Positions 1,606-59,431 of a stretch of DNA of 64,000 nt are shown piece after piece (the stretch's first letter is position 1; each line of letters starts with the position of its first letter). Origin of the DNA: Takakia lepidozioides (Eukaryota > Plantae > Bryophyta); assembly GCA_030704615.1 (NCBI GenBank), contig CM060731.1:18724001-18788000 (forward strand), given 5' to 3'. The notes beneath the pieces are model-generated. The model was not told the origin of the DNA and ran no database searches. It saw nothing but the letters and a program-made list of their open reading frames with translations. The translations under genes were made by a program, and so were the position numbers.

Positions 1606-1988
1606 GGCTTGGGGAGGGTTTAAAATTTTGGCATATGTTGTTTTATTTTTTATTTTTATTTTTTAATCTACAAAAAAAACATGCTAAACTTGTTCCCTAT
1701 ATCATGGAAGGAAGTCAGTGTAGTAGGGGATGTGTGTTGTGAGCATACAGTTGCATTAGTTTTGTATTTTCCTTTCACTATAACATATTCACCAACAGTC
1801 ACTAGCTCAGTGGGTTAAGTGCACTAAGTGCCACCCAGATGATTATGGGGTCAAATCTTGCTACTGACGGGTGTGGTATACTCTTCTCCTAAGTTCCTGG
1901 GTGGTCTCCCATTTCTACGCCTCCATGGCGGGGTTAGTGTGAAAGAGGTTATTTTCTCCTCTCACTACAATTAAGGGGCCTGATTTGT

Positions 1989-4819
1989 ACTAGAGAAAGG
2001 GCTGGGTAGGGCCGATTCTGCCCTGTAAGCGGCCCTTGGGCGAGCCCTATGGCCGCGCACATGGCCGAATCGGCCCTACACGACCCTTTCACTGGCATTA
2101 AAAGTTGGTAGGGCGTATTCGTACGTATTATACTGGATTCTACTATTTCCATCTTGCTCACTTCTACGGTGGTTTCATTGTTGTTGCGTGTAGTTGCTAC
2201 GTGTAAGTAGTTGTTGCGTTGATGTTATGTATTTCTGCTTCGTGATGGAGAGCCCGTGGCGTGGAGTTCTAGGAAATATTTCCAATGTGCCTCAGACGAC
2301 ATCAGGTGGTAATCTGAAGAAAGCGCGTCTATATGCTGCAGATTCGCAAGTGCCGAATTCATCTTTTTCAGATCCTGTTGCACAAAAAAATGACGACGAA
2401 GAAGATGAGCTCGATTTGGCTTTTTCTACGTACCAGTCTGATACAGGAGTTGCTTCTTACGACGATCCAGCTTTTGAAGATATGTTCAGTGTTGTCGATA
2501 ATGGATTTGTTGATGCAGATGGTAATTCAGTTCCTGTAAGTCAAGACATTCTTGATTTCAGTTGGTGGCAATGAAGGCATTCTCAGTCACCCTGCAATGC
2601 CACATTCCAATCAAACAATACTGAAATGGGAATTTGTGATCTTGATGCTGAACCGGATTGGTTAACAAATGGCACTCACGCTTTCAGCGCCGCTGCTGAA
2701 AATATTTTCATGCAAGAACCGATCAATGATGGCGTTCAGAATGCCGATTCTGCTAGTGCTTCAAGCGCGGAGACAATGGCAAAAGAATTCGACCTACTCC
2801 GACGTGGATTTCGGCAGCTTGACAAAGAAGAGGTCGAGGAATTGAAGAAGGGAGGGCCACGAAAATCACTGTATATGGAGCGCTGGGGGAGGAACCGGTT
2901 TGGAGACTGGAGGAAGGTCACCGGTGGTCTTTGCATGGACTCAATTGAAGAAATGTTTGTGCATCGCCTGCCGGAACTTGTGGAGATGCTTTCTCAGTTT
3001 ATGTTGGAGGTGCAACGCAAAGACGGGAAACTTTATCCCGGTGAAACCCTGGTTACACTATTGCGCGCTATTGGACGGATTATTAGGGGGAAATTGGAGG
3101 CCGATTCTGTCAGGACTAGTGAAGTGGCAGAGAAGTTCGTGATCATCGACGATCCTCGTTTTAAAAAAATGTGCATATCTTGCTTAATTGCTGTGAAGAG
3201 GTCTGTGAGAGCGGGAATAGGCCGTAAGAGAAAAATTACCTCTCCTCTTACCTACGAGATGGGACAGCAAATATTAGTGTTGCCAATGATGTGCAGAACT
3301 GACAGAAGGGGATGTGTGCTGCGTGTAGCATATTACGTGATACACAATTTCTGTGTACGTGCACAAACTGAATTGTACAACATAATGGATTGTGATTTTT
3401 CCATTTGCCAGGACAATATCAATGGGAAGCATGTCAGGTTCGACGAGAGGGATACGAAGAATCACTTGTAAAGTTGATTTGCTGCACTGCCAGCCAGAAA
3501 AAATGAGGCGATCAGTAACTTGTAATCATCCAAATCTCGTTGAGACCTTCGAGACATATATGTCTCATTGGCCGAAGTGGAATGAAAAGGATCTTGATCC
3601 GCCTCATCCTTTTTTTCTGCGAGCAATTAATGATAATCTCAACCTCACAGAGCCTGACGTCTGGTACGCAAAGAAAAGAGTGGGTGTAAAGATGATCGCA
3701 AAATGGCTGAAAATGATGGTAGCTGCTCTTCCTGGGGCGCATGATGGTAACTATACCAACAAGAGTGCACGGGTGACTACTATATGTCGATTTAATGCAA
3801 TGGGAGTTCCTCCAGAACTGGGGATGAGAATGACAGGCCACACCTCTAGGGAGGGTTACATGCGTTATGACATAGATCACGACGGAATAATCATGCGTGC
3901 GCTCCAAAATGTTGCTTCTGCAGTGCCAGGTACTGGTGGAGATGTGTCGTGGGAGGCAGCACTAAAATATGAAAAAGATCGTTACAAGAAGCTTCAGGGA
4001 TTTGCTATAACCGATGGCTCATCAACTAGTGCACCTGAATGTCTGGATTCGGTTTCTGGTGATCACTTGGCGAATGTGCCATCGTCGGTTTCTGCATCGA
4101 AGGAAGTTTGCGCTTCGAAGATATCTGCAGCATTGGCCGATTCTGTTGGAGTATCGAATTCTAAGGCCCTTGTTGTTCGTGCTCCTAATGAGCTCTCGCG
4201 CTTGAGTGATGATGATTTTTGGGAGGACAAGGGGGTTCTCAATGAGGTGAGTGAAATGATGCGCTCTCATGGAGCTCTGCGTCCAGGACCTACTTACAAT
4301 GTGTCGAACACTCGCACGATTGGAAGTACTATCTTTCAAGGGAATTTGACGAATTGCACCATTCAGTTGACTGTGCCGGATGCAGCTACTGCAGCTTCGA
4401 TTCTTTCTGGCGCTACGGGAGCTCCAAGTGATCCTGGTTCTGCGTAGTTTTAGATTCGGATTCACATTGAATCGATCATGCAAATCATTCTTGTTAGCAC
4501 TAGTGCTCCATTGATGCTGGATCCCGGTAGTTTGTAGATTAGATACATTTTTACAGCAATAATCAACCAGGAGCAGATTCACATTGAATCAATTTTGTAC
4601 AAAATTTCTCATTGAATTTCTGCGCTGCGTGCTTGCTTTCTCCGCCATTTTCTAAATTGAAACCGTAGCTGGATGGAGAAGCGACGTATGTCTCCCCGTA
4701 TGAGAATTATATGGTGTATTTATACGGTGCAGATTCTGTGGCAGAATCGGCAGTAGTGGCCGATTCTGCACACCAATTACGCCGGGAAAGGGCCCGAATA
4801 CGCCCTACCTGCTTTTAAC
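1989..4819 (+). mobile_element. Tyrosine-recombinase DNA transposon (Crypton/DUF3504-like), copy 1
   Basis: Boundaries set by the empty site at 47592-47634 and by the internal inverted copy of the joined ends (2067-2121). Encodes a YR; no RT or gag seen. Confidence 0.85.
2245..4447 (+). pseudogene. DUF3504-like tyrosine recombinase with one in-frame stop (2572-2574) and one frameshift (about 3467-3470)
   Basis: Catalytic motifs VRAQTEL (R), TKNH (K), TNKSAR (K-x-x-R), TGHTS (H), YMRY (Y), plus PFFLRA and WY..KRVG typical of DUF3504/CryptonA. Removing TTGT restores NHKVDL as in copy 2. Confidence 0.8.
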
Positions 4820-5192: not shown

Positions 5193-8100
5193 ATGCAGGG
5201 GAATCAGCACCGGGTCACTTTCTCTCTTCCTCCTGAGGGAGAATACTTCCAGGAAAAAGCGGAGATCGGTCCAGATGAGAGGAATCTGCCTCACAGAAAG
5301 CGGAGCTTCACACAGTTGCTGATGGAAAACCCTAAAGATGCAGATTCCATGGCCTTAGATGAGATGGACGCAACGTATGTTGATTAAATTCCTGCATGAT
5401 CTCTGATACCTTTGTCATTTCCAATTGAAATTTTCTAGGTTGGTGTATTGATATTCGTTCTATCAGTAGTTCTGTTATTGCATATGGCGTCGGGAGGATG
5501 CATCGTGCAAACTTGTAGGGGGTAGAAATTTTTAATGCATAGCAAGTAGAGGCTAACGTTTGAAATGAACACGAGCAAGTGGAATTGCCATTATGATAAA
5601 ATTGAGAGGGAAAACAGAGACGACTCCGGCCAGCGAATATACCGAAATTTTATTTGGAGTTCTGCTTTCAATGCAGGGATGATGATGGGGAGAGCGTTGA
5701 GCTTGAGGAAGATAATTGTGACGGGGATTCCATTCACGAAGAGTTAGAGCAGAGTGAGGCAGAGGGATTGGGAGGCAGCGAGAGAGAAGAGGAGGACGAG
5801 AGACACCATGAAGGAGACGCGGAGGTGGACGTGGAGGGAGATGATTATGAGGAGTACGAGCTCTTGTTCGAGGGGGAGATGGATCCCTTGACGTTTGCAG
5901 AGGAGGATGAAAGTGGAAAGCTGCCTTACGAGCAGTTCCAGCGGCTGGAATACGAGGCACTTGCTGCACGCAAGCGGAAAGCATTGGCCGCACAATCGTA
6001 AGTTTCTTTCTTATCCAAATTTTCTGTACCTTCCTTTATGCTGCACTCCTTAGGCATGATGTTGTGTGTGTGAGAGAGGAGGGAAGAAGAAAGAAAGAAA
6101 GAAAGAAAAACTACACAATGTCGGAGGGTCCCAGTGAGAGATAGAAGTAAAGAAAGAATTAACTTTATGACATCCTGAGTCCCCTGAGGGCTCATGGGAC
6201 AAAGTGGAAAGATAAGAACTGCATCTGAGGGAAGACAAAGTGACTTCTCTCAGCTCATCTGAAACACCAGGGTTTTAGGATAAGGGGTTGGATGGAGTCT
6301 GTTTGTATGTCTGATGGTAATGGAGTGACTTGTGTACACTGCTGTTGCTTCTCAATTGTGGGAGTACTTACAGTTTAAATAATGGCATGCCACTTCTTCA
6401 ATACATCAATACCATCATTTCAGGAAATGACCTCTCACATGGCAGAAAAAATATTCAAAGCTCTGGGTATTGTATTGGCACGGTCTGATCTCCTGGTTCC
6501 TTTCTTCTTTCTGTTAGGGCAGAGAGTGCACAGGCAAAGAAGGCCAAGCAGCAAGATGTATTTGGGGCAAGTGTGGATGACATCTGGAATGCTGCAGGCT
6601 TTGGATCTAATCGCCGGCGCCGAAGAGAGGTCCGTGAATCTTACGAGGGAAGAAAGAAGAAAGAAATAATCTTTATAATGACCACACACCTGAGAGAGAG
6701 AGAATGTCGTCATAAGATGTTGGTTGCTGTAGTCTTGTGGCCATAGACCCCACGCCCAGTTTGGGCTGAACAATGTGGAATATGAACTCTCCTGGATGCT
6801 GTTGTCGAATTTCAGCCAACCAGTCTGTATGAGACTCCACTCAATATTAGCACAGTGATTACCGACAGCTGTTGGCACTCCCGACAAATGGAATTGAGTA
6901 TTGATGCTTGTACTGCTGTCGATTGAATACCATGAGGTTGCTGCTGTAGCTCACTGGCTGGTGTGGACTATGTGCCAGTCAAAAGAGTTCAAGAGAAAAG
7001 TGCAGGAAAGAGGAAGAGATTCTTGATTCCACAGAAGCTCAAAAGCGCAGAAAGAGAGATGGAGAGATTGCCATGTTTAGTCAATCAGCTCCTTTCTTGC
7101 CATGGTCATTTGTATTTGATGGGCTCACGATTGTCTGGCATCCTGCTTCATTGAAGTTGATGGACTCCTTCTGTTTGGCAGCCAAAGAAGAGAGGCAGAA
7201 AGAAACTTCCTCCAGGTGCGTCAAGACTGACACCTGAGGTTACCAGGAAACTTGGGGAAGCAAATCTTCTGTATGCCAGCGGCCGATTTGATGAGGTGCA
7301 CCTTGAGTTTCATATGCCTTAAACTTATACACAGTTAGAGAATGTACTCATAGATGACGTTTGCAATGCCCTGTTGCTTGCCATAGACCCTGTGCCTAGT
7401 TTGGGCGAAAGAGAGATTGTACTCATAAGACATTGTTTGCAGTAGCCTTGTGGCCATTGACCCCGCGCCCAGTTTGAGCGGGAACAAAAGGGACAGAACC
7501 TACCTCTGTCAGGGGCTGACGTTGGTAGTAAGACTTACCTTCATATATAGAATTAATCCGGGTTTTCCAGATATCCTCTAGAAATCCCTTCACACAAGCA
7601 TCAATCTGCTGTGTGTGATTTGCCCAAAAACTAGGCCTCAGGAGGGCCTGGGCTTTTGGCTCAGCCTCGAGACTTTCAAAGTTGGTAAACAGGGGTACAG
7701 GCACAATTCCCTTGATAGATTTGAAGAGAGCGTCTCTTTGGTGAGAGAACCCCGGACAGTGTATCAGAAAATGAATACTGTCTTCAGATTGCCCACACAA
7801 CGGGCAATTGCACTCTCCCTTTCCTCTCTGCTTCTGTTTGCTGTTCAAAGGTAGGCTTCCTGCCCTGAGTTTAAATTTCAGTCTAGTGCCGAGAGTGGGT
7901 AGACCCTTGAGGTCATCCAAGATGTCCTCCCTCATGTCACTGACTGGAAACAAGTTCAGGGAAGTTTTCTGCCTAACTTCATTTTCATCAGACAATCTCA
8001 TGGCAACAGACATGGCTTTGGACACTACAGCCTCTAAGTCAGATTGGACATATGTTGCAGCTGACCCCACCATCTGACCTTGAATTCATCTCGTTGGGAG

Positions 8101-11100
8101 CTTAAGGACGGAATGCCAAACTCACCCCGAACAGCCACATTGGCTGTTTTGGAGCATGCTGACATACACTCCTTAAGCACCTCCACTTGAATGGATTCTA
8201 GAGACTTAGCCTGGTTGGAGTTATGATGTTGATCAAGTTCTTTTGTGTAGTCCTATGTGCAAAATAAAAAAATTCATCCTACATATGATAATCTTGTGCC
8301 ACCTACATTCTATATAAGGCTCTTACTTATGGTACATTGCAGGCACTGGAGCTACTAAAGGAGGTGGTACGGATAGCTCCAAATGTGGCAGATTCATACC
8401 ACACACTGGGCCTCTTGTATGATGCCAAGGGTGACCGCAAGAAGGCTCTTAACTTCTACATGATTGCCGCCCATCTCACACCCAAGGATGTTGTGCTATG
8501 GAAACGCTTGGCTTCCTGGTCAATGTAATATGTTTTCCTGACTTTGCGCTTCCACTCTACATTGGTTTGTTGAGGAACATTCTATTCTTTCTATATGATG
8601 TGTAAAAATGTGAAGCTTGCACAGATTGATAGTGACGTGGACTATGACTGGTTCAGGGAACAAGGAAATTCAGGACAGGTGATATATTGCTTGACAAAAG
8701 CAATAAAAGCAGATCCCACTGATGAGGATGCCAAGTGGGACCGCGCCTCTCTGTATGCAGAGCTACAGGACTATCAAAAGGCTGCAGAGTCTTTTGAGCA
8801 AATCCTAACACTGCGTCCCAGTGATGTTGAGGTGTGCAAAATGGTTGCCAAGGTAGGGGCTTATATCTCTTTTTCACTCCCTCAATTCTAGATTGGGGTG
8901 CCAAGTCCTAAACAGTGAATTTGTTTGACAACTGGACATATGCATGCCACCAAAATCACCTCAACTGATGCTGGAAACTTGAAACCCTTTGCAAGTTTAC
9001 TGGACATCTCAAAAAGTTTGGGTGTTGTTGTGTGTCCAATCAGATGCAACACAAGGACGGGCAGTGTGAACGGGCCACACAGGTGCTGGAAAGATTGATT
9101 GATGAGCATCCAAGGGAGGCGGATTTGACAGCTGTCAACCTTCTAGCAGAGCTGCATATGGATAACGGTGCCTTTGTGGCAGCAATTTCCCGGATTGAGG
9201 GGGCGCGTGTTCTCTATTGTGCTGACCAACACCTTCCCCTTGACCTTGCTGTGAAAGCTGGCATTTGCTATGCGTATATGGGGAATTTGGATGATGCTGA
9301 GGTGGCTTCCTTTCTATCCTGTTCCAATTATACTGACCAGAATGCAATAGGTGCTCCATCAACTTTGAATTGATTGAGTCGGATAGCAGTTTGACTCTAT
9401 CTTTTAGCCTTCAGACATGAAAGAAAGTGTGCCACTTCAAAATCAGTTGGCTATGAGACTGAGTTTGGTGGTACATTTGTATCAGTGTTTTAGGAATGTA
9501 ACAGCATAAATGAGCTTGGCTAAAGACACAGTTAGAAGGCTCAGGGTTAGGCCTTTGGATAGTAAGCAGCGAACACCAAGGGGTATTCTCAGAGCAAAGG
9601 GGAATCCTCGGGGAAACCTGATGTGAGTCTCCAGGGGGAAGCCACAGGCCTGATCTTGAGAAGCAAGATTGAGGGCATAGCATGCTGTGAAGTAGAGTAC
9701 TCCTGGGCAAGTGCAAGAAGAGGATTCAAGGTTACATGGTTGACTTGCTCATACATTGATGTAGGGTCTGGTTTTACTATATGAAGACTGCGCCATCCTA
9801 AGTTCTCAAACACATTAAGTTGTTTAATTTGAAATGACTTTGGCAGAGAAATTTTGACGGGCTAAGTAAGGAGAGTGTGGATGAAATTGCGGATTTGGTG
9901 CTGGAAGTGGGTGATGCATACCTGGCGCTTGGAGAACACAGGCACGCCCTCCGCTTTTATCAGAAGCTTGATGGCAACAAGGCCTTTGACAATGTAGATC
10001 CCATTCTCTCTCTTTTTTCCTTCAACTGACTCCAGTCCATCCAGACTGGCAAGCACAGTCAACGTTTACACCTCTTTTCCTTTAAGAAGAGAGCTTGAGA
10101 GTCTTCTGGGTCTCATGAACACCACCTGTTAGCTTCACGCCTTGAGGCCTTAGGTGATTAGTGGATATATCTCAATGCCGGATGTCCTGAAACTGTCACT
10201 GCTGCTTGTTGTTTCACAGCACTCTACATCACTCTTGATATTCTGTATATGCAGTCATTCATCAGTCATATGTCTGTAAACCTGTTGCGCAAACAGTTGA
10301 AATTGAGGGGAAAGCAAAAGAGAGACTAGTTCTACTTGTTTTCGATGATGACAAGTAATGTGGCAAGCCTTTTTACCTGCACATGATCCCTCTTCTTTAT
10401 CCACCTGCCTTTTTAGGGTGTCGCTCTGTTTCACTCCAGCAGACAGGATTGTGAAAACATGTATCAAAGGGGTAGAGTTTCAATTGTGATGCCAGAGGGA
10501 TGTGTAACTATCTAAGAATCTCTTCTGGTACACATGGAGGGCAGGTACTGTTGTGGCTAAAGGTGGCTCAATGTTACATTTCAATAAAGGCAGATGCAGA
10601 TGCGATTTGTGTTTACCTTCAGGGTATGCCCCCCATCTACTTCACTGGCTCTCTCTCTCTCCCTTTAGGGAACGGCATGAGTACATTCTCTGTCTTGTTT
10701 CAAAACTCGATGCAGAGCCTAAGCCCTGGCCCTGTTCTAATAGCTGGGCAGCTCACACACAGTAGATTGATGCTTGTGTGTAGGGCTTTCTAGAGGAAAT
10801 CTGGAAAGCCTGAACCAATTGCATAAACCAAGGTGAGTCCCACTACTGGTGTGAGCCCCTCACCAAGGTTTGTTCAGCCCAAACTGGGCCGCAGAGTCCA
10901 TGGCGGCTACAGCCACAAGGCTCCAGTCTGTAGGCTATTGCTGTGTGGGCACTTCCCTTTGTTTAGAAGGTAAGCTTCACTACTGAAGCATTGTCCTACT
11001 TCCTCCTTCCAGGAAACGAATTTTGATGTGGCATGGCATTGATGCTGGGGTTGGCACAGTGGTGAAGGAGATGCCCGAACATGTTGATGCACGTCTTACT

Positions 11101-14100
11101 CTTGCCTCTCTACTCTGTGATTCTGGCCGAGTTGATGAGGCTGTGGATTTGCTTGTCCCTCCAGGTTCAGGTTCCCTCGAGCCTTTCCTTCACATGGTCA
11201 TTCATCCTTGTATCTGTATGTCCTCAGCATACAGGGCATGGAGCCGTTTTCATATCTTTTGTGTGGATATATTTGTGTATGTACTATGGATTTATGAGAT
11301 CTGAGGGCCTCCTTGCAACCCAAATTAAATCCGTCATTTCAGTTGGCCTGAGAAAGAATTGTGGAGGTGTGACCTTTCGGTTAATGTCAAAGCAAAGCAG
11401 TGGTAAATGTCACAATTTCTGTCCCTCTGACGGTCAGGAGAACTGCCTTGGAACATCAAGATCTATCTGCCATAGAACATTCCTGATTGTGTCAAGCTGC
11501 AAATAGTTAGCTGTCATCTAGATATGGTTAGGACATTATCTTGATACTTCAGTACGTCTTTAGATGTGTGTGCATGTTTGTGTGGACTTATTTACAGTTC
11601 AAGGCTTTGTATAGTGGCTCTCCTTGATTGTGCATATTGGTGGGCCTATGTATGCCAGTGAAAGTAATCATACCTGCAGGGTTGTCATTATGGTAGGTTA
11701 GCCGAGACTTCTCTGTTTTTATGAGCAGTGGTGGGTGTAAAATAGAGGGCACAGCTGCTTCTACTGAAATTCAGCAAGAGGAACAGCCATGGTGGCAGAA
11801 GGGGAAGGTGAAGACCAAACTAGCTCAAATATACTATTCACAGAATCGACTTGGCTCCTTTGTGGATACAATTTTACCCAGCATTCAAGAATCTCTGTAC
11901 ATTGAATCTCTCAATCAGAAGGTGATCTTCTCCCTTCCACTTCTCTCAGAACAGACTTTCAACAAGGGTCATTTTTGTTGACCTTCCGAAAGGGATTTTC
12001 TGAGCGTTGTTCTTTCTGGAAGTCACCAGATCTTCTTATGGATGAAAGCATTGGGGCCATTCTTGTCCATTCAGCATCTGTAACCTGCATTTTTGAGATG
12101 GTCTTTCTTTGTATGCTTGGAACCAGTCGGGGTGAAAGTAATTACTGGAGCACAAGGACTCTTACCAGAGCTTAGATACTTCAACATTGGAAAGCTTACA
12201 CTGTTTAAGCATTTACTTTCTTGGTAAGGGTTAGACCCTTTTTCTAAAGAACCTTGTTTTTCTGCTTTTCTGAGAGAATGAGCAACAACATCTAATCAAC
12301 TGGAGACAATCCTCATGGTAAAAAGCACTTAGACGTAGATGTTTTGGGCTCCACGATTTGAGGTGAGGGGAAGGGGGGGGGGACTTATCTCCTTGTCTGC
12401 TTCTCCAATGTGTGCCTGACACAAACGAAATTCATCTGGGCTGTTGGAGCAGGTGAAAAGCAAGAAGCGCTTGCACAAGAGTGTGTTATCTGCAAGAGTG
12501 CAATGGTTGGAACAGAATCGAGTGGACCAAGTGTTTCATAGCTTCCGCCCAGTGTTGTCCCGCACAGACATGTAAAATTCATTTGTATTCAAGTGTAGAT
12601 CTTTTGACTGTCAGAATACTTGAGTGAATGTCATAAATTCATCTGCCTCTGCAAAATTTGTCACCTTTCTTTATACATGTTCTCGTTAAGTACGTAGGCA
12701 TTCACAGGAGATTCAATCTTTTGGTTGTCGTTGCTGACTTCGATGCAAAAACCTGGAGGAGTTTTCATGCATCCTGGCCTACTACTCACAATGAACTCAC
12801 CCGACAAATGTCAAAGACACAATTCTTCTTAATGAAGGTCATAGCTTCAGCTGTCTGAGATTGCAAGGTGGGGGGTGGGCACTGAAGGGCCAAAGCATCG
12901 AGGGCAAGGAAACGGCTGGCAAAGCTGGCTGCTGATAAGGAGGAAAAAAAAGCTGCAGTGTTGGCTGCTGGGCGTGAATGGGAGAGTGACGAAGAATCCG
13001 ATGAAGCAGCACCGGTTATAATTTTCTCTTTTATTCTCTCCACGAAGCAATGCTGAACATTGTTGTTGTATCTGCAATTGAATTCGATGAAACGATGGAC
13101 AACTTGTCAACAAGTTCCTGAAAGTTTTTTCAATGTGGGCAGGAGGTGGAATTGAAGGTTGCGCCGCTGCCGGATTTATTGAAGGATGAGGAGCACTTCC
13201 AACTTTTGCTTCAGGTTCATCAACAACTTTCTTTCACGATTCTGCCTTTGGGTGGCTATGTTGTAGTAACTTCTATACGCCTGATATCACAGGTAAGGTT
13301 TAATTGTCAAGGCCACATTAGGATGGGTACTGGCCTGGAGTACCTTGTTGAAGCTAAATACCATTTTGGCGTACTCATAAGATATGATGCAACCTTCTGT
13401 GCTCCCAGCGAAATGGTAGCCTGTCTGCCTGTATGTACTCTCTATTCACAAAGGTCGCAATCTTTACACCATGATGTTATGAGAGTTACTTGAGAATTTG
13501 ACATGTGATTGCAGATCTGCAAGTCGTTGGCTTTGTTGAAGAGATACTGGGAAGCCCTTGAGATTGTGCACCATACTTTGCAAGTGGCCCACAATCTTGG
13601 CAAGCCCAAGTGTGATGAGCTTAGGGCCCTTGGAGCACGTAAGTGATATTGTCTGCCTGAAGTTGCCAGATACTGTTGTATTGTCATCCTGTTGACAGTT
13701 GACTAGAATTTGGAGGTATTGGCTTCAAGTGTGGCCAGCGCTGCTTCTGGTGAGACTCCGGTTGAGAAGTCATGCCAATTGACTGGTGTCCTATGCTGTT
13801 TGCTGGATATCAGAAATTGCATACAAGACAAGGGACAGCAAGTATGGATACGACTGTGTGCGGTACATGGTGCAACAACGGCCCTACAGCTTTAGCATGT
13901 GGAATTGTTACTACCAAGTGGTCTCCCGGTAACCTGTCTGTCTTATATCTATTATTCATCAGGATGGCTCTCTTGTTCTTCAGTTCTCTTTTGGCTCAGG
14001 GTAGGTGTAAGTGAGGAAGAGTGGCAGGTTTAGTTGTGGTCTGATCTATGCATAGTGAAGTATAGATGCGGAGGGAGGTAAAGATTGCATCACATGTAAT

Positions 14101-52992: not shown

Positions 52993-54444
52993 TTTACTGT
53001 GAATTCTTAGGTCGAAACAACCCCCTACCACTTGAGGACTTGAGCCATTATCCTAATAACTTACAATGGTTTTTGTCAGCTCCGATAAAAAATCTTCAGT
53101 TTGACCTTGGGGAGTGGATTTGGAGATTTAAAGATCACGTCCCTTTTTTTTATTATAATGTCAAGCTAGGCTATTCCCTGCTTTGATAGAAATGGATCGT
53201 GAATGCAAAATGGACCTCCAAGTGGGCACACCTTTTAGGCTTCCCTACAAATTTGAAACCTATCCCATCTAATGTATGGAGAAAGGATAGTAGATCTTCT
53301 AAGATATCAATTTTCCTTCGGAATTGGCCAACAGCAAGAGTGCGATAATGTTTAAAGTTCACTAAGAACTTATGTCTAAGGCTCGGAAAGCATGGAAGGT
53401 GTTTGTTGCAACTCTTTTCAGATGTGGAGATTGAAGGCGTGTAGAATTACTCGAGGGCTTTGACGCTTCTTGGGGACATTGTGGCTGCTCTGCACAAGGA
53501 CTTCAGATACATGAATTTCTTGGAACGACTCCATCCCAACATGTTGGCAGCTCTATTGTGCTATAAAGTCTACTTGTTGATGGAAATGATTCGGATGTCA
53601 ATTGGCACCGTAGCCTTAGGAATGGCAAGTCAAAGGCTCAACTTTATTTCGATCAACCTAGTTGGTAGGTTTTCTCTTGGATCAGGCTCGGCTCTTGTCT
53701 AGGTCCCTGATTCTTATTTTCTTCTGCTTCTTTAGCTGTGGTGGAGCGGTTCTCCTTAGTTACAGAGTGGCGCCTCTTTTGTTTGCCTCCGTGGCTTCTT
53801 AGCAATGATATTTTTTCCTTGCCCTCTTCTAATATATTCAGGGCTTCAACACCCTTTATTTTTATTTTTCAAAAAATGTTTCAAGGGTTCGAGTTTCGTT
53901 TTGCGAGATTATCCATGGGTGAGGATCTTAAAGGTGACACTACCCACTATCTCGCCTATTATGGAAAGGGCATGTTATCGTGTGAGCAAAATCGGGCTAC
54001 TATAGGGTAACTTGTTTATCATGTATAAGGGTTACTTGTTCCTTATGTGTTGTGATTAGTGCTCATGTGAACAACTAAAAATAGTTTCATGGGTTTTGAG
54101 TTTCACAAATTATAAGTTTCGCTATGGAATATTTTCTAGGGAATATACATAATATTCCCTCATTATGGTCAGGAGGTGGTTTTTCTGCCATTTTTGCCTC
54201 TCCGTTAAATGGCAGAATATTCGAGTAGGTAGCAGAATGCCCCAATAGGTCGCATAATGCACGAGTAGTTGGCAGAATGCTCGGGTCCTCCATGTTTTGG
54301 GCAGTTGTTGTGGCGGGCAGGTATTTAAGTGTTTTGTGAGGCAAGTATGACGTTTCATCTACTTCACTGTTTCCTCTACTTGCATGCAACTTGGCAAACC
54401 TCAACATTCGTGCTATGATTCATGAAATTCTCTCTGAAAGATAA

Positions 54445-54585
54445 CAGGTTCCCAATAAAGCCACAGTCCTCTATGTTCTCAAGGCATGTATCATCCTAGG
54501 CAAAGAGGTCCATGTTGACATCGTCAGAGATGGAGTTGCTCCGGCTCTGGAGACTAATTCCCTTGCTACTATGTATACAACATGA
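54445..54585 (+). pseudogene. PLS-PPR gene fragment inside YR element 2
   Basis: VPNKATVLYVLKACIILGKEVHVDIVRDG...LETNSLATMY resembles L/S repeats of the PPR at 39270-39420. Confidence 0.65.
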
Positions 54586-55079
54586 CATTTTTAAACAGAA
54601 ATTGAAGTGCTTCAAAGTTGAGCATAAAAGTGTATTTGGCTGAGATAGGCCGAGACATAGAAAACATGTTCCCTAACTTCAGCAGAGGGTGACCAACAAA
54701 TTGGTGCATGCTAATCATTATTTATCATGTGCACAACAGCTGCAGCTCTAGCAAGATAACATAGACCTAATTTCACATTTACCAAGGCCTTGAATGACTA
54801 AATGGCATATGACAGATGAAGACTTAAAGAACGGCTTTCTCCCAGTCAAGATAACACAGCCAGATCGGCTTGTATTCAAGTGATCAAGTTTCGAGCAAAT
54901 TTATAACTGTTGAAGTCCTAAATTTTGGACTGTATTAGGTTACTCGGTACTACAAGTGAACAGAGAAACTAACACGTAACCAAGAAACAAGTCACAAGAA
55001 CAGTTTGTATGATCACGGTCTCATGATCAAAATGTAATTCAACATCATGTCAAGTGCAACTAAAAGTGAAACTAATCAA

Positions 55080-57252
55080 TTATCCATCGCGCTTTTTGAG
55101 CACAGTTTTGAGGAGATCAACTGCAGCAACATTACTGTTACTATTTATGTTGAGCGTGATATTGTAGATCCGCCCGGAATTAGTCACTGTCGACGAAACT
55201 GTAGACGTGGAAGGAAGATTTGACCCCAAGCGTCGAGCAATAGCTAAGTCAAGATTCTTGAGGACGGTTTCATCAGACCAAAAGTCATCAATATCAACAA
55301 CTCGAGGATTATCAATAGAAGCCTCTTCTGCAAGGGTTCCGTTTGAACTCACAGGAGGAACTGATGACACACTTGAGTTTTTTGTTTCAGTTGCTCTTGT
55401 TGAGTTAACAATATCAACTACAGATAGCAAGCTTCGTCACAGATGGCTGTGTGGTCGATGAGACAGATTCGTCACCTTTAACTTTGTTCATGATGATTTC
55501 TTGATATTTTTTGCATTGATAGGCTATCGCAGCCTCCCAGCTCCCATCTCCCATCCCAAGAACACATCCAACGACGTTTTGCAGAGCCTTTTGTATCATA
55601 TCTTCTTCAATGTTGTCATACCTCATATAACCGCCCTCGGATAAATGCCATGTCGTCATCATGCCATATCGCACGGGAACACCCATTGCATTCATTCGGC
55701 TTATGGCAGCTGTACGAGGTGTTTTGTTTGTAACTCTTACATCAGCTAATTCAGGGATGTCTGTAGTCATCATCTTAAGCCATATGCTGATAGGGGAATG
55801 ACACACGGATCTTTGAGTACCACTGGTGTGAAGTGCCACAACAACAAGTTAGGCCATCAAATGAAAATCAACAGTCACAAGTGTTTTAAACAATATTCGA
55901 AATTGTCACTATAATATAGCTAGACTAAAATAGTCAAGTTTAAGTCGAAATATAAGAATGAGACATAGCGTTGCATGCTGAAAAATATGTCTTAGATTTA
56001 TCATCACTTGAGGATTCTTGGGATTGCCATCGATTGCACGTAAAAACAGAGGGTGCGGGCCTAGTTTGTCTTCGTTCCATTCAGGAAGATGTGAGTAATA
56101 AAGCTTGAAGGTGTCAACCAAATCTGGCAGATTCTTCATCACATATTTTTGGAGACGTTCCGATTGACAATAATTGAGGTCCACTTTATGATTCTTGCTG
56201 TTTCTCTCGTCAAATCTCACAAGCTCTCCCTCATAATCCTTTCCGAACTCGAAGTCCACATCTGCAAGATTGTACAACTCGGATTGTCCTCTTATGCCAA
56301 ATTGTAGGGTACAATAAAAAGCCACTCTGAGTTGGAGACCGCGTTTGTCTGTCTTTGCTAATATTGGTTGTGCAAGAATCTGAAGTTGCTGCTCAGGTGT
56401 CAAGCCAGCTATGCTTTCTTTTTCGTCCAATTCCTTGTACAACAGACCTTTTCACATCTTCTTGGCAAGATAGACATGACTTCTTGAAACGTGGATCTGT
56501 AAGAATATGAAATTCTTCCACGACTTTGCCAGTAGCAACAGATTTGGCTTCACAATTTGCGCGGATAATCCCTCCAATTGCACAAAGCAGTCCTACCAAT
56601 GTTTCACTAGGATAAAGGCTTCCATCCGTTTTCTGAACCTGTAAAAAAAATATACTCAACAACTCTAGAAGGTCCATAGTCTGTGTCTCAAAAAACTCTT
56701 CAATTGTAAGAGATGTTGATCGGCCCGTGACAGACCTCCAATCATGAAAACGCTTTTTAGCCCACTTTTCTACATTTGAAGAGTAACGACTGCCTCCTTT
56801 TGCCACTTCAGAGATTTCTTTTTCATCAAGCGACCTGAAGCCTCTAGCCAAGACGTCTATACTTGAAGTAGCTGCAGTTTTGTTTGTAATCTGTTCTTGT
56901 AGTCCCTCTCGATTTTGGACTTGCACGCCCTCATTGCTTTGAACTTGTGGTTCTACTTGGTCCTAAATTTCTTCAATAGCGGATTTAGCTCCTTCAAAGT
57001 AATTCACAAGCATACTGTCAATTTCTCCCGATCAGGTGAATTGAAGTCTGGCAACTTAACATGCTCCGTCCTGTGAGGAGAAAATGAAACTCCAAGATCA
57101 AAGCTGGGATGGTTTGTGATGAAAAGAGCTAGTGTCCTGATCTCAACAACATCTTTGGTGGCAGACTGCACATTCTGTTTAGGAGCAAGGTTCGTAATGT
57201 TGTCGAAAACAAGGCGACCATCAAAGGCGCCCCTTAATCTCTTCAGCAACAT
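55080..57252 (-). pseudogene. DUF3504-like tyrosine recombinase, frameshifted, with a 185-bp intron (55823-56007)
   Basis: GIRGQSEL, SKNH, TNKTPR, TWHLS, YMRY; colinear with the copy 1 protein (LYPSETLV, DPRFKK, GIGRKRK, DDFW). Confidence 0.8.
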
Positions 57253-59431
57253 TCATACTGTTGGAGCCCACCTCCAGCATGTCATGTGAGATGGGTGCAA
57301 CTTCTTCTGCCATGATAAGTATGCAACTGCAAAAATTACATGACCTTGATCGAAAATGTTGGAGAAAAAAGAACAAAACCTGCGCTCAAAATAATGATGG
57401 GAAAAAACCACCTCTGACCATAACGCGATGGAACGGTCGGGGCCGGGCCATTCTGCCCCCTGAGCTACCCAGCCGTGAATTTTGGCGGGGCAGAATGGCC
57501 CGGCCCTGACCGTTCCATAGCACGTGATACCCAATCTCTCACACGTCATCCCAATGAGCGCCTAAAACCAGCAGCCAAACCAATTTTGGCAGCTTATTTC
57601 ATGGCTTAATTTGATGATAGGCTATTTTTGGCCAAAGAGAAGAGAGAGAGAGAGAAGACTCCGGCCGAAGTCGACGTATTTGCTATGTGGCCACTTCTTT
57701 TTGGCATAATGGCCTTCACCGGGACTTTAAGATGCTATTTTATCTATAATGAGAAGCAATGGTTCTTTTTACTATGCTCTCTTGGTTCTTCCCTCTCTTG
57801 CTCAGCTTGGGCATATTTGCTTCATGGCCAATTGGGATTTTGTTTTTTTCCCTCACCTAATAAAGTGGAACCAGGGCCACTGTCCCCTATTCACTAAAGT
57901 AAAAATATTTAAAAATAAATAAATAAAATCTCTGATATCCGGGCCACACATGACATGTGCATTGCCTCAACGCAGTTCCCATTACGGGGGCCTTTGGTAC
58001 GCGACAGTGTCAAGTCATTCCTAGCTCCTACATTGCTGGCGGGGTGTCCACACGACATAGTTTTCTAACGTAGGAGAAACTAGGGTATGTCAAGATATTT
58101 TACCACTAGTGTGAAACTAGCTAAGAAATAGTTAATTTTGATATATTGACATTTGGGATTGATCCAAGTGTCAATCCAGGGACCAATGTATGTTTGGGTA
58201 CCGGACGGGGTTATTTTCACGGCAGAGCGCGGTGGGCTCATCTTTCTCGAGTTGAGCCTCACTGCGTCTAGCTATAGCGCCGCAGTGTGGATTCCCCATG
58301 GCGTGGCATGCACTTGGCTCGACTTAATATATGAGTGATATTTTTTATGTACAAGTGTGTGAGTTTGAGAGAGCTTGTGTGCTTCTATCCTTCTTCTTTA
58401 TCACTCGAGAAAGATCAGCTCGACTCTGTGAGTGCCAGGTTCGAGTTAGTTGTAGCACTTATGTTTCCAGATGAGAAACTACCCAGCTTAGAGTGCAGGG
58501 ACCCGTGCATGAGCCTATCCAAAGCGGATAGGATGCAAAGGCGAACATGTTGCAGGTTTGCAATGGAAAGAGAGACGGTCAGCCTGTGTTGAAGAGCGGC
58601 GTTGTATAGCTCAACGCTACGGCAACCAAGTTTGGGCTTCTAGTGTGAAGCGGAGGAGATGCTGGCCATAGAGAGCCATTGATTGCTGACCCGAAAGCAC
58701 TTGCTTTGGGGCCCATGAACTGCATGTATGATTATGGTGTGGAAGAATAGAAGACCAAGCTAGAGGGCTGGTTCTTCTCTTGTTCAAATCAGTGCACTTG
58801 TGAAGCATGTGCTGAGTTGGAGTTTCAATCTGAAACTCAGCAGTGTAAGGGCTCTTAGAGTGGCAAGAGCGGGGCTTGAAGGGCAGCAGCGAGGCGCCCT
58901 AAAGCCAGGGAATACGCATGAGAAACCTAGGCACACCAAGGTTGTAAAGGTGTGTATTTTCAGATTTGTTTTTGTGAGCTTTACGAAGAAAGACAAATTT
59001 TTGGGCAATGGATAGTTTGTTTGTTGAGTTTGGGGTGCTTCTGGCGGGCCGTGAGAGCTCAAGAGAGCATGACATCAGATCTGGGGGCTTCGCGGAAGCC
59101 ATAGCTGGTCGGCAGCAGATGCAGAGGCAAACCCCAGCTCGGGGAGAGCTCGGGAACGTGTGGGAACGTCCTGGAAGCGATCGGGAACGCATGGGAACTT
59201 GTGGGGAGTTCCAGGGAATGCAGGGAACAGTGGCTGTGACCGTGGTCGTGGCCGTGATGGGCCGTGGGGGTGGTATCACGAGATACCACGAGCCCAGGCC
59301 GTGACTGTTGACCGTGACCGTGGGATATCACGGGGTAGCTCGTGGGCAGCGTATGCCTAGGGCGGGCCGTGAGAAGTCGTGGTGTTGAGGGCCACAGAAG
59401 GCCGCGGACACGCTGAGTGAGAAGGAAAAAA

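Follow-up and report, generated by a model that had tools for sequence, protein, structure and literature searches.

The 64,000-nucleotide stretch of the Takakia lepidozioides genome considered here (the window; assembly GCA_030704615.1, contig CM060731.1, positions 18,724,001 to 18,788,000, renumbered from 1) carries two divergent copies of a transposable element that encodes a tyrosine recombinase. The second of these, copy 2, lies on the minus strand and is the main subject of this account. Its ends were placed by analogy with seven other copies and from the pairing of its arms, leaving an uncertainty of 2 nt at the 5' limit (57521 or 57523), and its parts, in the order in which the element is read, are as follows.

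54162..57523, minus strand: copy 2, whole element, GTGC...CCATAAT, 3362 nt, decayed
57487..57523, minus strand: 5' terminus and outer hairpin arm A, containing a ATTCTGCC box
57460..57486, minus strand: hairpin loop, 27 nt
57425..57459, minus strand: inner hairpin arm A', pairing with the 5' terminus at 33/35
between 57425 and 57424, minus strand: internal junction A'/B
57387..57424, minus strand: segment B, directly adjoining A' and complementary to the 3' terminus
57004..57252, minus strand: N-terminal fragment of the recombinase, frame broken downstream (likeness by eye to the copy 1 open reading frame (ORF) 2194-2574, P0001 and P0002)
56393..56926, minus strand: fragment of the core-binding domain of the recombinase, with a weak QRICH1 Pfam match
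55909..56442, minus strand: first half of the catalytic domain (R of box I, SKNHK)
55823..56004, minus strand: non-coding interruption of 182 nt with a degenerate donor
55414..55839, minus strand: second half of the catalytic domain (NKTPR, WH, Y)
55080..55430, minus strand: C-terminal tail fragment, assigned by position against the tail region of relatives, its ORF lying outside alignment A1
54211..54280, minus strand: sub-terminal ATTCTGCY array of three boxes (54211-54278) spaced 20 and 40 nt apart, the same box occurring in both hairpin arms
54162..54196, minus strand: 3' terminal segment B', complementary to B

A preliminary description of this locus had claimed that the 5' end of copy 2 pairs with an inner arm at 33/35 and that the bases following this arm mirror the 3' end of the element, and both features were recovered, the former by a repeat search and the latter by repeat search and gapped alignment. 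The repeat search returned arms of 35 nt at 57425-57459 and 57487-57521 with 94% complementarity, together with a second pair, 54163-54185 and 57401-57423, that is 78% complementary over 23 nt when aligned without gaps. The hairpin is followed by ~38 nt (57424-57387) that read as the reverse complement of the final ~35 nt of copy 2 (54196-54162), and when A and B are taken together a gapped alignment of the joined ends with the reverse complement of the internal region gives 94% identity over 68 positions. Since A' mirrors the 5' end and B mirrors the 3' end, the abutting segments A'B constitute an inverted copy of the joined ends, read from B' to A, and virtual end-joining turns B'-A-loop-A'-B into one imperfect palindrome of ~170-190 nt. 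In copy 2, A also resembles B. Treated as single-stranded DNA, the 5' hairpin has a folding free energy of -44.9 kcal/mol (z -8.3), and none of 200 shuffled sequences folded equally well. B/B' and the hairpin are the only long repeats that the repeat search detected in copy 2; long inverted terminal repeats and split direct repeats were absent from it, and likewise from copy 1 and the other loci, B/B' being 23-45 nt long across the set. A search of Rfam gave no match near the gathering score.

The other element in the window, copy 1, belongs to a different subfamily and has the same layout.

1987..4819, plus strand: copy 1, whole element
1987-2041, plus strand: arm A
2044-2097, plus strand: arm A'
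2098-2121, plus strand: segment B
4795-4819, plus strand: segment B'

As had been proposed, the arms of the two copies are very different in sequence, with layout and complementarity retained; their 5' termini align (GTAC-TAGAG in copy 1, GTGC-TATGG in copy 2) and a TAAY 3' end is kept in both. The left flank of copy 1, at window positions 1800-1860, has a transfer RNA-like appearance (GCTCAGTGGGTTAAG...) and may be regarded as a candidate only.

Homologues were drawn from three ENA assemblies, Logan run contigs, a JGI metagenome, the lycophyte Diphasiastrum complanatum and the liverwort Riccia sorocarpa. When the DNA around those from other assemblies was inspected, the complete layout was found at four further loci (L001, L002, L004 and L011), in each of which terminal hairpin arms of 37-58 nt are directly followed by a segment that is the reverse complement of the 3' end. 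In L005 the ends are the same but the hairpin has lost its centre, and the contig of L006 starts inside the hairpin, with B and B' present. Five subfamilies can be distinguished (copy 2; L002/L006; L004/L005; copy 1/L001; L011/L012), with ~65-77% DNA identity where they can be aligned; all elements start with GTAC and end with TTAAC, except that copy 2 has GTGC and TAAT. A control set of 39 non-simple hairpins with arms of at least 20 nt, taken from both strands of the window and seven loci, showed that a downstream reverse-complement partner accompanies only the hairpins of the recombinase elements.

The preliminary description had made its case depend on further families sharing the structure, and this proved to be so across the clade but not in more distant relatives, so the layout is a trait of the clade rather than of all plant DUF3504 elements. 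The element at L007 of Riccia sorocarpa (protein P0012, 36% identical) has, in place of the hairpin and junction, long imperfect terminal inverted repeats (TIRs) of ~100 nt or more (5875-5977 and 12020-12122, starting GGGGTGTCAAA and flanked by TTA/TAA), an arrangement that resembles a TIR transposon. The Diphasiastrum loci L003 and L008 both look like incomplete fragments; L008 shows no structure, and in L003 an AT-rich hairpin of 40 nt lies upstream of the gene at a distance of 220 nt (L003:5640-5800), without a B/B' pair. In or beside the loop of this hairpin are four copies of the 8-nt sequence TAACGGGC, three direct and one inverted, which may be the Diphasiastrum lineage's own binding box. 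L010 and L014 lack the ends, and L013:1-1766, a JGI contig, joins L006-like 953-1875 to 382-1226 and was set aside as an internal tandem rearrangement or assembly loop rather than an end junction. A metagenome scan gave a single match, L009, which is 22% identical, AT-rich and without usable structure. Non-autonomous derivatives, a search for which had been suggested, were not found in the ~190 kb of sequence covered, nor were solo hairpins or further fragments.

Evidence that the layout is selected comes from the way in which the arms diverge. Differences were counted pairwise between elements at positions -25 to +35 around the crossover, and in each comparison between 9 and 32 of them were double compensatory changes, as against 2-14 one-sided and 0-4 non-compensatory changes; L001 against L002, for example, gave 20, 6 and 0 respectively, and copy 2 against L002 gave 32, 3 and 2. 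Co-variation extends over ~60-85 positions, far beyond a protein footprint, and RNAalifold applied to six hairpins returned 42 pairs, 23 of them with compensatory changes. The preliminary description's view of the end/internal-junction arrangement as a selected family trait is supported by five subfamilies in which complementarity has been kept by compensatory change. Invariant sequence is limited to an ATTC/GAAT box inside the stem and to the bases next to the junction. The sub-terminal array repeats the ATTCTGC box of the arms, and 8 of the 11 matches to ATTCTGCY in the window fall within the two elements, where ~0.6 would be expected for the length of the elements. At the hairpin tip a mini-palindrome, GGGCGAGCCC, is conserved in four subfamilies (alignment A3, columns 63-78; copy 1 at ~2035-2050, L001, L011 and L004) while the surrounding stem co-varies; the tip of copy 2 differs.

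The palindrome is not perfectly symmetrical, and part of its asymmetry is itself conserved. It had been stated that the joined ends and the internal junction correspond with no gap, which holds only if the dinucleotide GT at 57523-57522 is taken as flanking DNA and fails if it belongs to the element. Because GT precedes 7/7 independent insertions with unrelated flanks it is more likely part of the element, which puts the start of copy 2 at 57523 and makes the joined ends longer than the internal copy by 2 nt. Counted in this way, there is a 2-nt bulge at the crossover (TA, or TG in copy 2) in all six copies in which it could be measured. Mismatches are concentrated at positions 0 to +9 (12/51, compared with 27/299 elsewhere; Fisher p 0.006), and some are common to copies that are only ~75% identical; as diverged copies share them, such mismatches have been maintained rather than erased, and the arms are not simply recopied from each other in each cycle.

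One pair of elements bears directly on the nature of the internal junction. L011:782-3572 and L012:169-2866 are 98.9% identical over 2.7 kb and sit on separate contigs, their flanks being unrelated to each other. The full layout is present in L011. L012 begins exactly at the first base of B and ends in TTAAC; it has no hairpin, and its boundaries are the inverted repeats B and B'. Random truncation would reach the A'/B point within 1 nt only about once per thousand, and the start of L012 therefore indicates that the internal junction is a discrete breakpoint at which DNA is broken and joined, not merely a passive complement of the ends. Both elements carry the same broken ORF, so that one of the two, if not both, must have moved by mobilisation in trans when the gene had already decayed. 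The pair also fixes the 3' boundary, as homology does not extend past TTAAC, which is followed by T in one element and by G in the other. A nested insertion was considered as the source of GGCCATTCC, which is common to the flanks of L011 and L012, and was rejected when no BLAST homology was found.

Insertion follows a simple rule, Y^G, in which the 5' flank ends in a pyrimidine (7/7) and the 3' flank starts with G (7/8), and both junctions of L012 obey the rule of the other copies. The rule holds on one strand only, which is suggestive of single-strand exchange, though no proof of it. There is no target duplication, with the sole exception of L001, whose flanks carry an 8-bp repeat, GGGGTTTC, directly at both ends (5777-5784 and 8592-8599), seen in no other copy; a target duplication, a tandem target and coincidence are all conceivable origins for it. 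Terminal direct repeats of 4-6 bp, as in Cryptons, were not found either, the flanks sharing only G (in 7/8 of the 3' flanks) and GT.

Between its ends copy 2 is occupied almost entirely by a single gene. Nearly all of the interior aligns to one protein, interrupted by several frameshifts, and no reverse transcriptase (RT), RNase H or Gag was found among the ORFs and Pfam matches of copies 1 and 2, nor in the eight copies as a whole, and no room is left for them. The protein fragments of the window have only weak QRICH1 and DUF3504 Pfam matches, and called genes within the element bounds of L001, L002, L004 and L005, and on the L006 contig, had no Pfam match on record; a distant relative, P0020, passes the DUF3504 cutoff and other relatives match Phage_integrase weakly. 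An AlphaFold (AF2) model of the Riccia relative, with a predicted local distance difference test (pLDDT) score of 80.5, matches Cre across both domains (E 9e-8), and also the Tn1549 integrase, the integron integrase (IntI), XerA/XerH and human QRICH1. The catalytic residues R, SKNxK, NKSxR, GH (H/W) and Y are conserved in alignment A1, K in NKSxR replacing the usual H of HxxR. The protein is a tyrosine recombinase with a predicted Cre-like two-domain fold, and it probably belongs to the DUF3504/Crypton type. Well downstream of the catalytic Y (A1 columns ~835-860) a motif N-C-T-I-Q-L-T-V, with variants, is kept at 25-30% identity and may be an extra module for DNA binding or multimerisation.

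The gene has also retained, in some lineages, an intron. A canonical phase-0 intron (GTAAGT...AG) is present in L002 (~7215-7385) and L006 (~1470-1640), after the V codon in ..PGV|WYSK.., and the interruption in copy 2 lies at the same codon; the intron is precisely absent from the subclade of copy 1, L001, L004 and L005, and L011 has none either. On the basis of gene content copy 2 is Crypton-type, not DIRS-type, and it is a decayed member of a clade of RT-less, recombinase-only transposons in early-diverging land plants.

The inverted end-junction layout has so far been described only for DIRS retrotransposons. In DIRS-1 the internal complementary region (ICR) is 88 bp long, the left end being matched by 33 complementary nt and the right end by 55, and has been shown by experiment to be essential (PMC7192593). 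The elements described here resemble DIRS-1 in having two abutting internal parts complementary to the extreme left and right ends, and thus an inverted circle junction, of similar size (88 bp as against ~60-85 bp), in an element encoding a tyrosine recombinase. They differ in being without RT/RNase H, Gag, methyltransferase and long inverted terminal repeats, in having a recombinase probably of the DUF3504/Crypton type and a retained intron, and in the position of the internal copy, which is 27-40 nt away from the left terminus and folds back on that terminus as a hairpin, whereas the ICR of DIRS-1 is near the right long terminal repeat (LTR). Ngaro, PAT and VIPER elements (A1 ... B1 A2 B2) likewise possess an internal copy of the circle junction (B1/A2), but theirs is direct rather than inverted and they carry an RT.

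Cryptons, in contrast, have been described as having neither TIRs nor long repeats, only terminal direct repeats of 4-6 bp (PMC3212892, PMC13465315), and the only one observed to be active is CryptonF-1_cRei, the copy number of which rose despite clean excisions (PMC9977147). The present elements are like Cryptons in their single tyrosine recombinase gene, the lack of RT and of target-site duplication and the restriction of target homology to micro-homology, and the affinity of the protein to DUF3504 and QRICH1 points, if weakly, to the CryptonA/DUF3504 lineage. They are unlike them in the terminal hairpin, the inverted junction copy, the sub-terminal box arrays, the sharing of at most 1 nt (G) with the target and the K that stands for the usual H of HxxR. 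Full-text literature searches found no paper ascribing to Cryptons either a folded site or an internal complementary region. The elements described here represent a Crypton clade with a DIRS-like end/internal-junction architecture.

Folded single-strand recombination sites are used by bacterial tyrosine recombinases. In the attC sites of integrons, recombined by IntI, and in attP(+) of CTX phage, recombined by XerCD, recombination takes place on the stem of an imperfect hairpin, in which bases next to the crossover are bulged or unpaired, and integration corresponds to an opening of this hairpin on one of its arms, without duplication. The resemblance to the elements described here lies in an imperfect hairpin with conserved extrahelical bases at the crossover, which in the present case is an in silico structure; the arm ends read YYYAAC / GTTRRR like the core sites of attC, possibly by coincidence. 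There are differences, in that this is a eukaryotic element of 3 kb with a much longer stem, the crossover follows AAC instead of lying within it and a single-stranded form is hypothetical.

These considerations lead to an explanation to which we would give an even chance, namely that the elements are of Crypton lineage and that their circular form carries an imperfect palindrome of 170-190 nt that works by base pairing. The element would pass through a circle, the intermediate assumed for Cryptons, with a palindromic junction; in the integrated state one arm of the palindrome would have been opened between TAAY and GTRC, A'B being the other arm. In a single-stranded or cruciform-extruded intermediate A'B would pair with B'A and so present the termini as a duplex recombination site. 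The 2-nt bulge and the mismatch-rich patch directly 3' of the crossover might then mark the strand on which the recombinase acts; it would cut one strand behind TAAY and transfer it to a Y^G target, leaving no target duplication. Cutting at A'^B, on the opposite arm, would be possible as well and would generate hairpin-less B...B' copies such as L012. The ATTC/GAAT boxes of the arms and the sub-terminal ATTCTGC array are likely to be binding sites of the recombinase, co-variation over the whole length favours pairing over mere double recognition by a protein, and the one-strand target rule and the lack of duplication fit single-strand exchange. In favour of the palindrome, too, the virtual circle junction folds as one hairpin of ~170-190 nt with z -8.6 to -19.6.

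A number of observations weigh against this explanation or limit it. The fold statistics of the virtual circle junction were computed with RNA energy parameters, and the co-variation could also reflect concerted evolution of a duplex palindrome. G.T-type mismatches number 8 on one strand and 8 on the other when the decayed L004 is excluded, and with no excess on either, no strand can be named. The element does not encode a source of single-stranded DNA, reading frames are broken in every copy examined, and L012 is a single case. A protein search with the catalytic fragment of copy 2 returned no relatives, so that copy 2 is the sole member of its subfamily to have been found.

A model in which folding is not required is an alternative that we regard as distinctly less probable than the pairing explanation. 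Here the circle would be double-stranded, with inverted sites B'/A and A'/B flanking a hairpin module in the manner of the inverted FRT sites of the 2-micron plasmid; the internal site would be a second or regulatory one, and the two would be alike through shared recognition by the protein and gene conversion. Such a model accommodates L012, which shows that the internal junction can be a real end, and the conserved ATTC/GAAT boxes in all four arms, and in copy 2 each junction is itself a pair of inverted arms, A resembling B. A double-stranded circle is, moreover, the form that Cryptons are believed to use (PMC3212892), and CryptonF-1 has been found to produce inversions between sites (PMC9977147). 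What it explains less well is that co-variation spans all 60-85 nt, including positions that are free to vary between subfamilies, and that B and B' are ~3 kb apart when integrated, so that conversion would need the circle. Integration by the second site should produce hairpins at the 3' end, and these were seen in 0/8 copies, while the 2-nt difference in length would give the two sites unequal spacers.

The likeness to DIRS-1 raises another alternative, which appears improbable: that A'B rebuilds or splints the ends of complementary DNA (cDNA) made from an end-truncated transcript, with an RT supplied in trans by another element and integration by the element's own recombinase. The layout agrees with the ICR of DIRS-1 in logic and size, in DIRS-1 that region is indispensable and the RT works in trans (PMC7192593), a single strand of whole length is natural for cDNA, and the intron has been precisely removed in one subclade, made up of copy 1, L001, L004 and L005. 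Against this, RT, RNase H and Gag are absent from all eight copies, there is neither poly(A) nor an LTR-like repeat, two subfamilies have diverged without losing the canonical intron and the recombinase is probably of the DUF3504/Crypton type, which the recombinases of DIRS and Ngaro elements do not match (PMC3212892). It is very hard to believe, finally, that the structure has no function, being a chance palindrome or an unrelated foldback or miniature inverted-repeat transposable element beside a TIR element B...B'. L012 does show that the B...B' unit can stand alone, but five subfamilies share the same position, GTRC start and co-varying arms, among the 39 screened hairpins the property is confined to these recombinase elements, and stray hairpin modules are absent from the ~190 kb.

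If the pairing explanation is extended, plant Cryptons would integrate from a folded single strand and be the first eukaryotic counterpart of integron attC and CTX-phage attP, and the internal complementary region of DIRS elements would have been inherited from such a Crypton ancestor; this is offered tentatively and seems to us rather unlikely as it stands. The movement of Cryptons is still largely inferred, and with a co-varying palindromic junction there are now defined ends and candidate binding boxes to work from, in a structure that lends itself to mutational tests. Cryptons and DIRS retrotransposons, which share only the recombinase, are linked by the same end/internal-junction logic, and the finding is relevant to the long-standing idea that a Crypton and a retroelement together gave rise to DIRS elements. 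Were the fold to be the substrate, single-strand recombination by tyrosine recombinases would be extended from bacteria to eukaryotes, and were the DIRS region to have been inherited from a Crypton, the joining of ends by an internal complementary arm would be ancestral to the eukaryotic tyrosine-recombinase elements and would predate the acquisition of RT.

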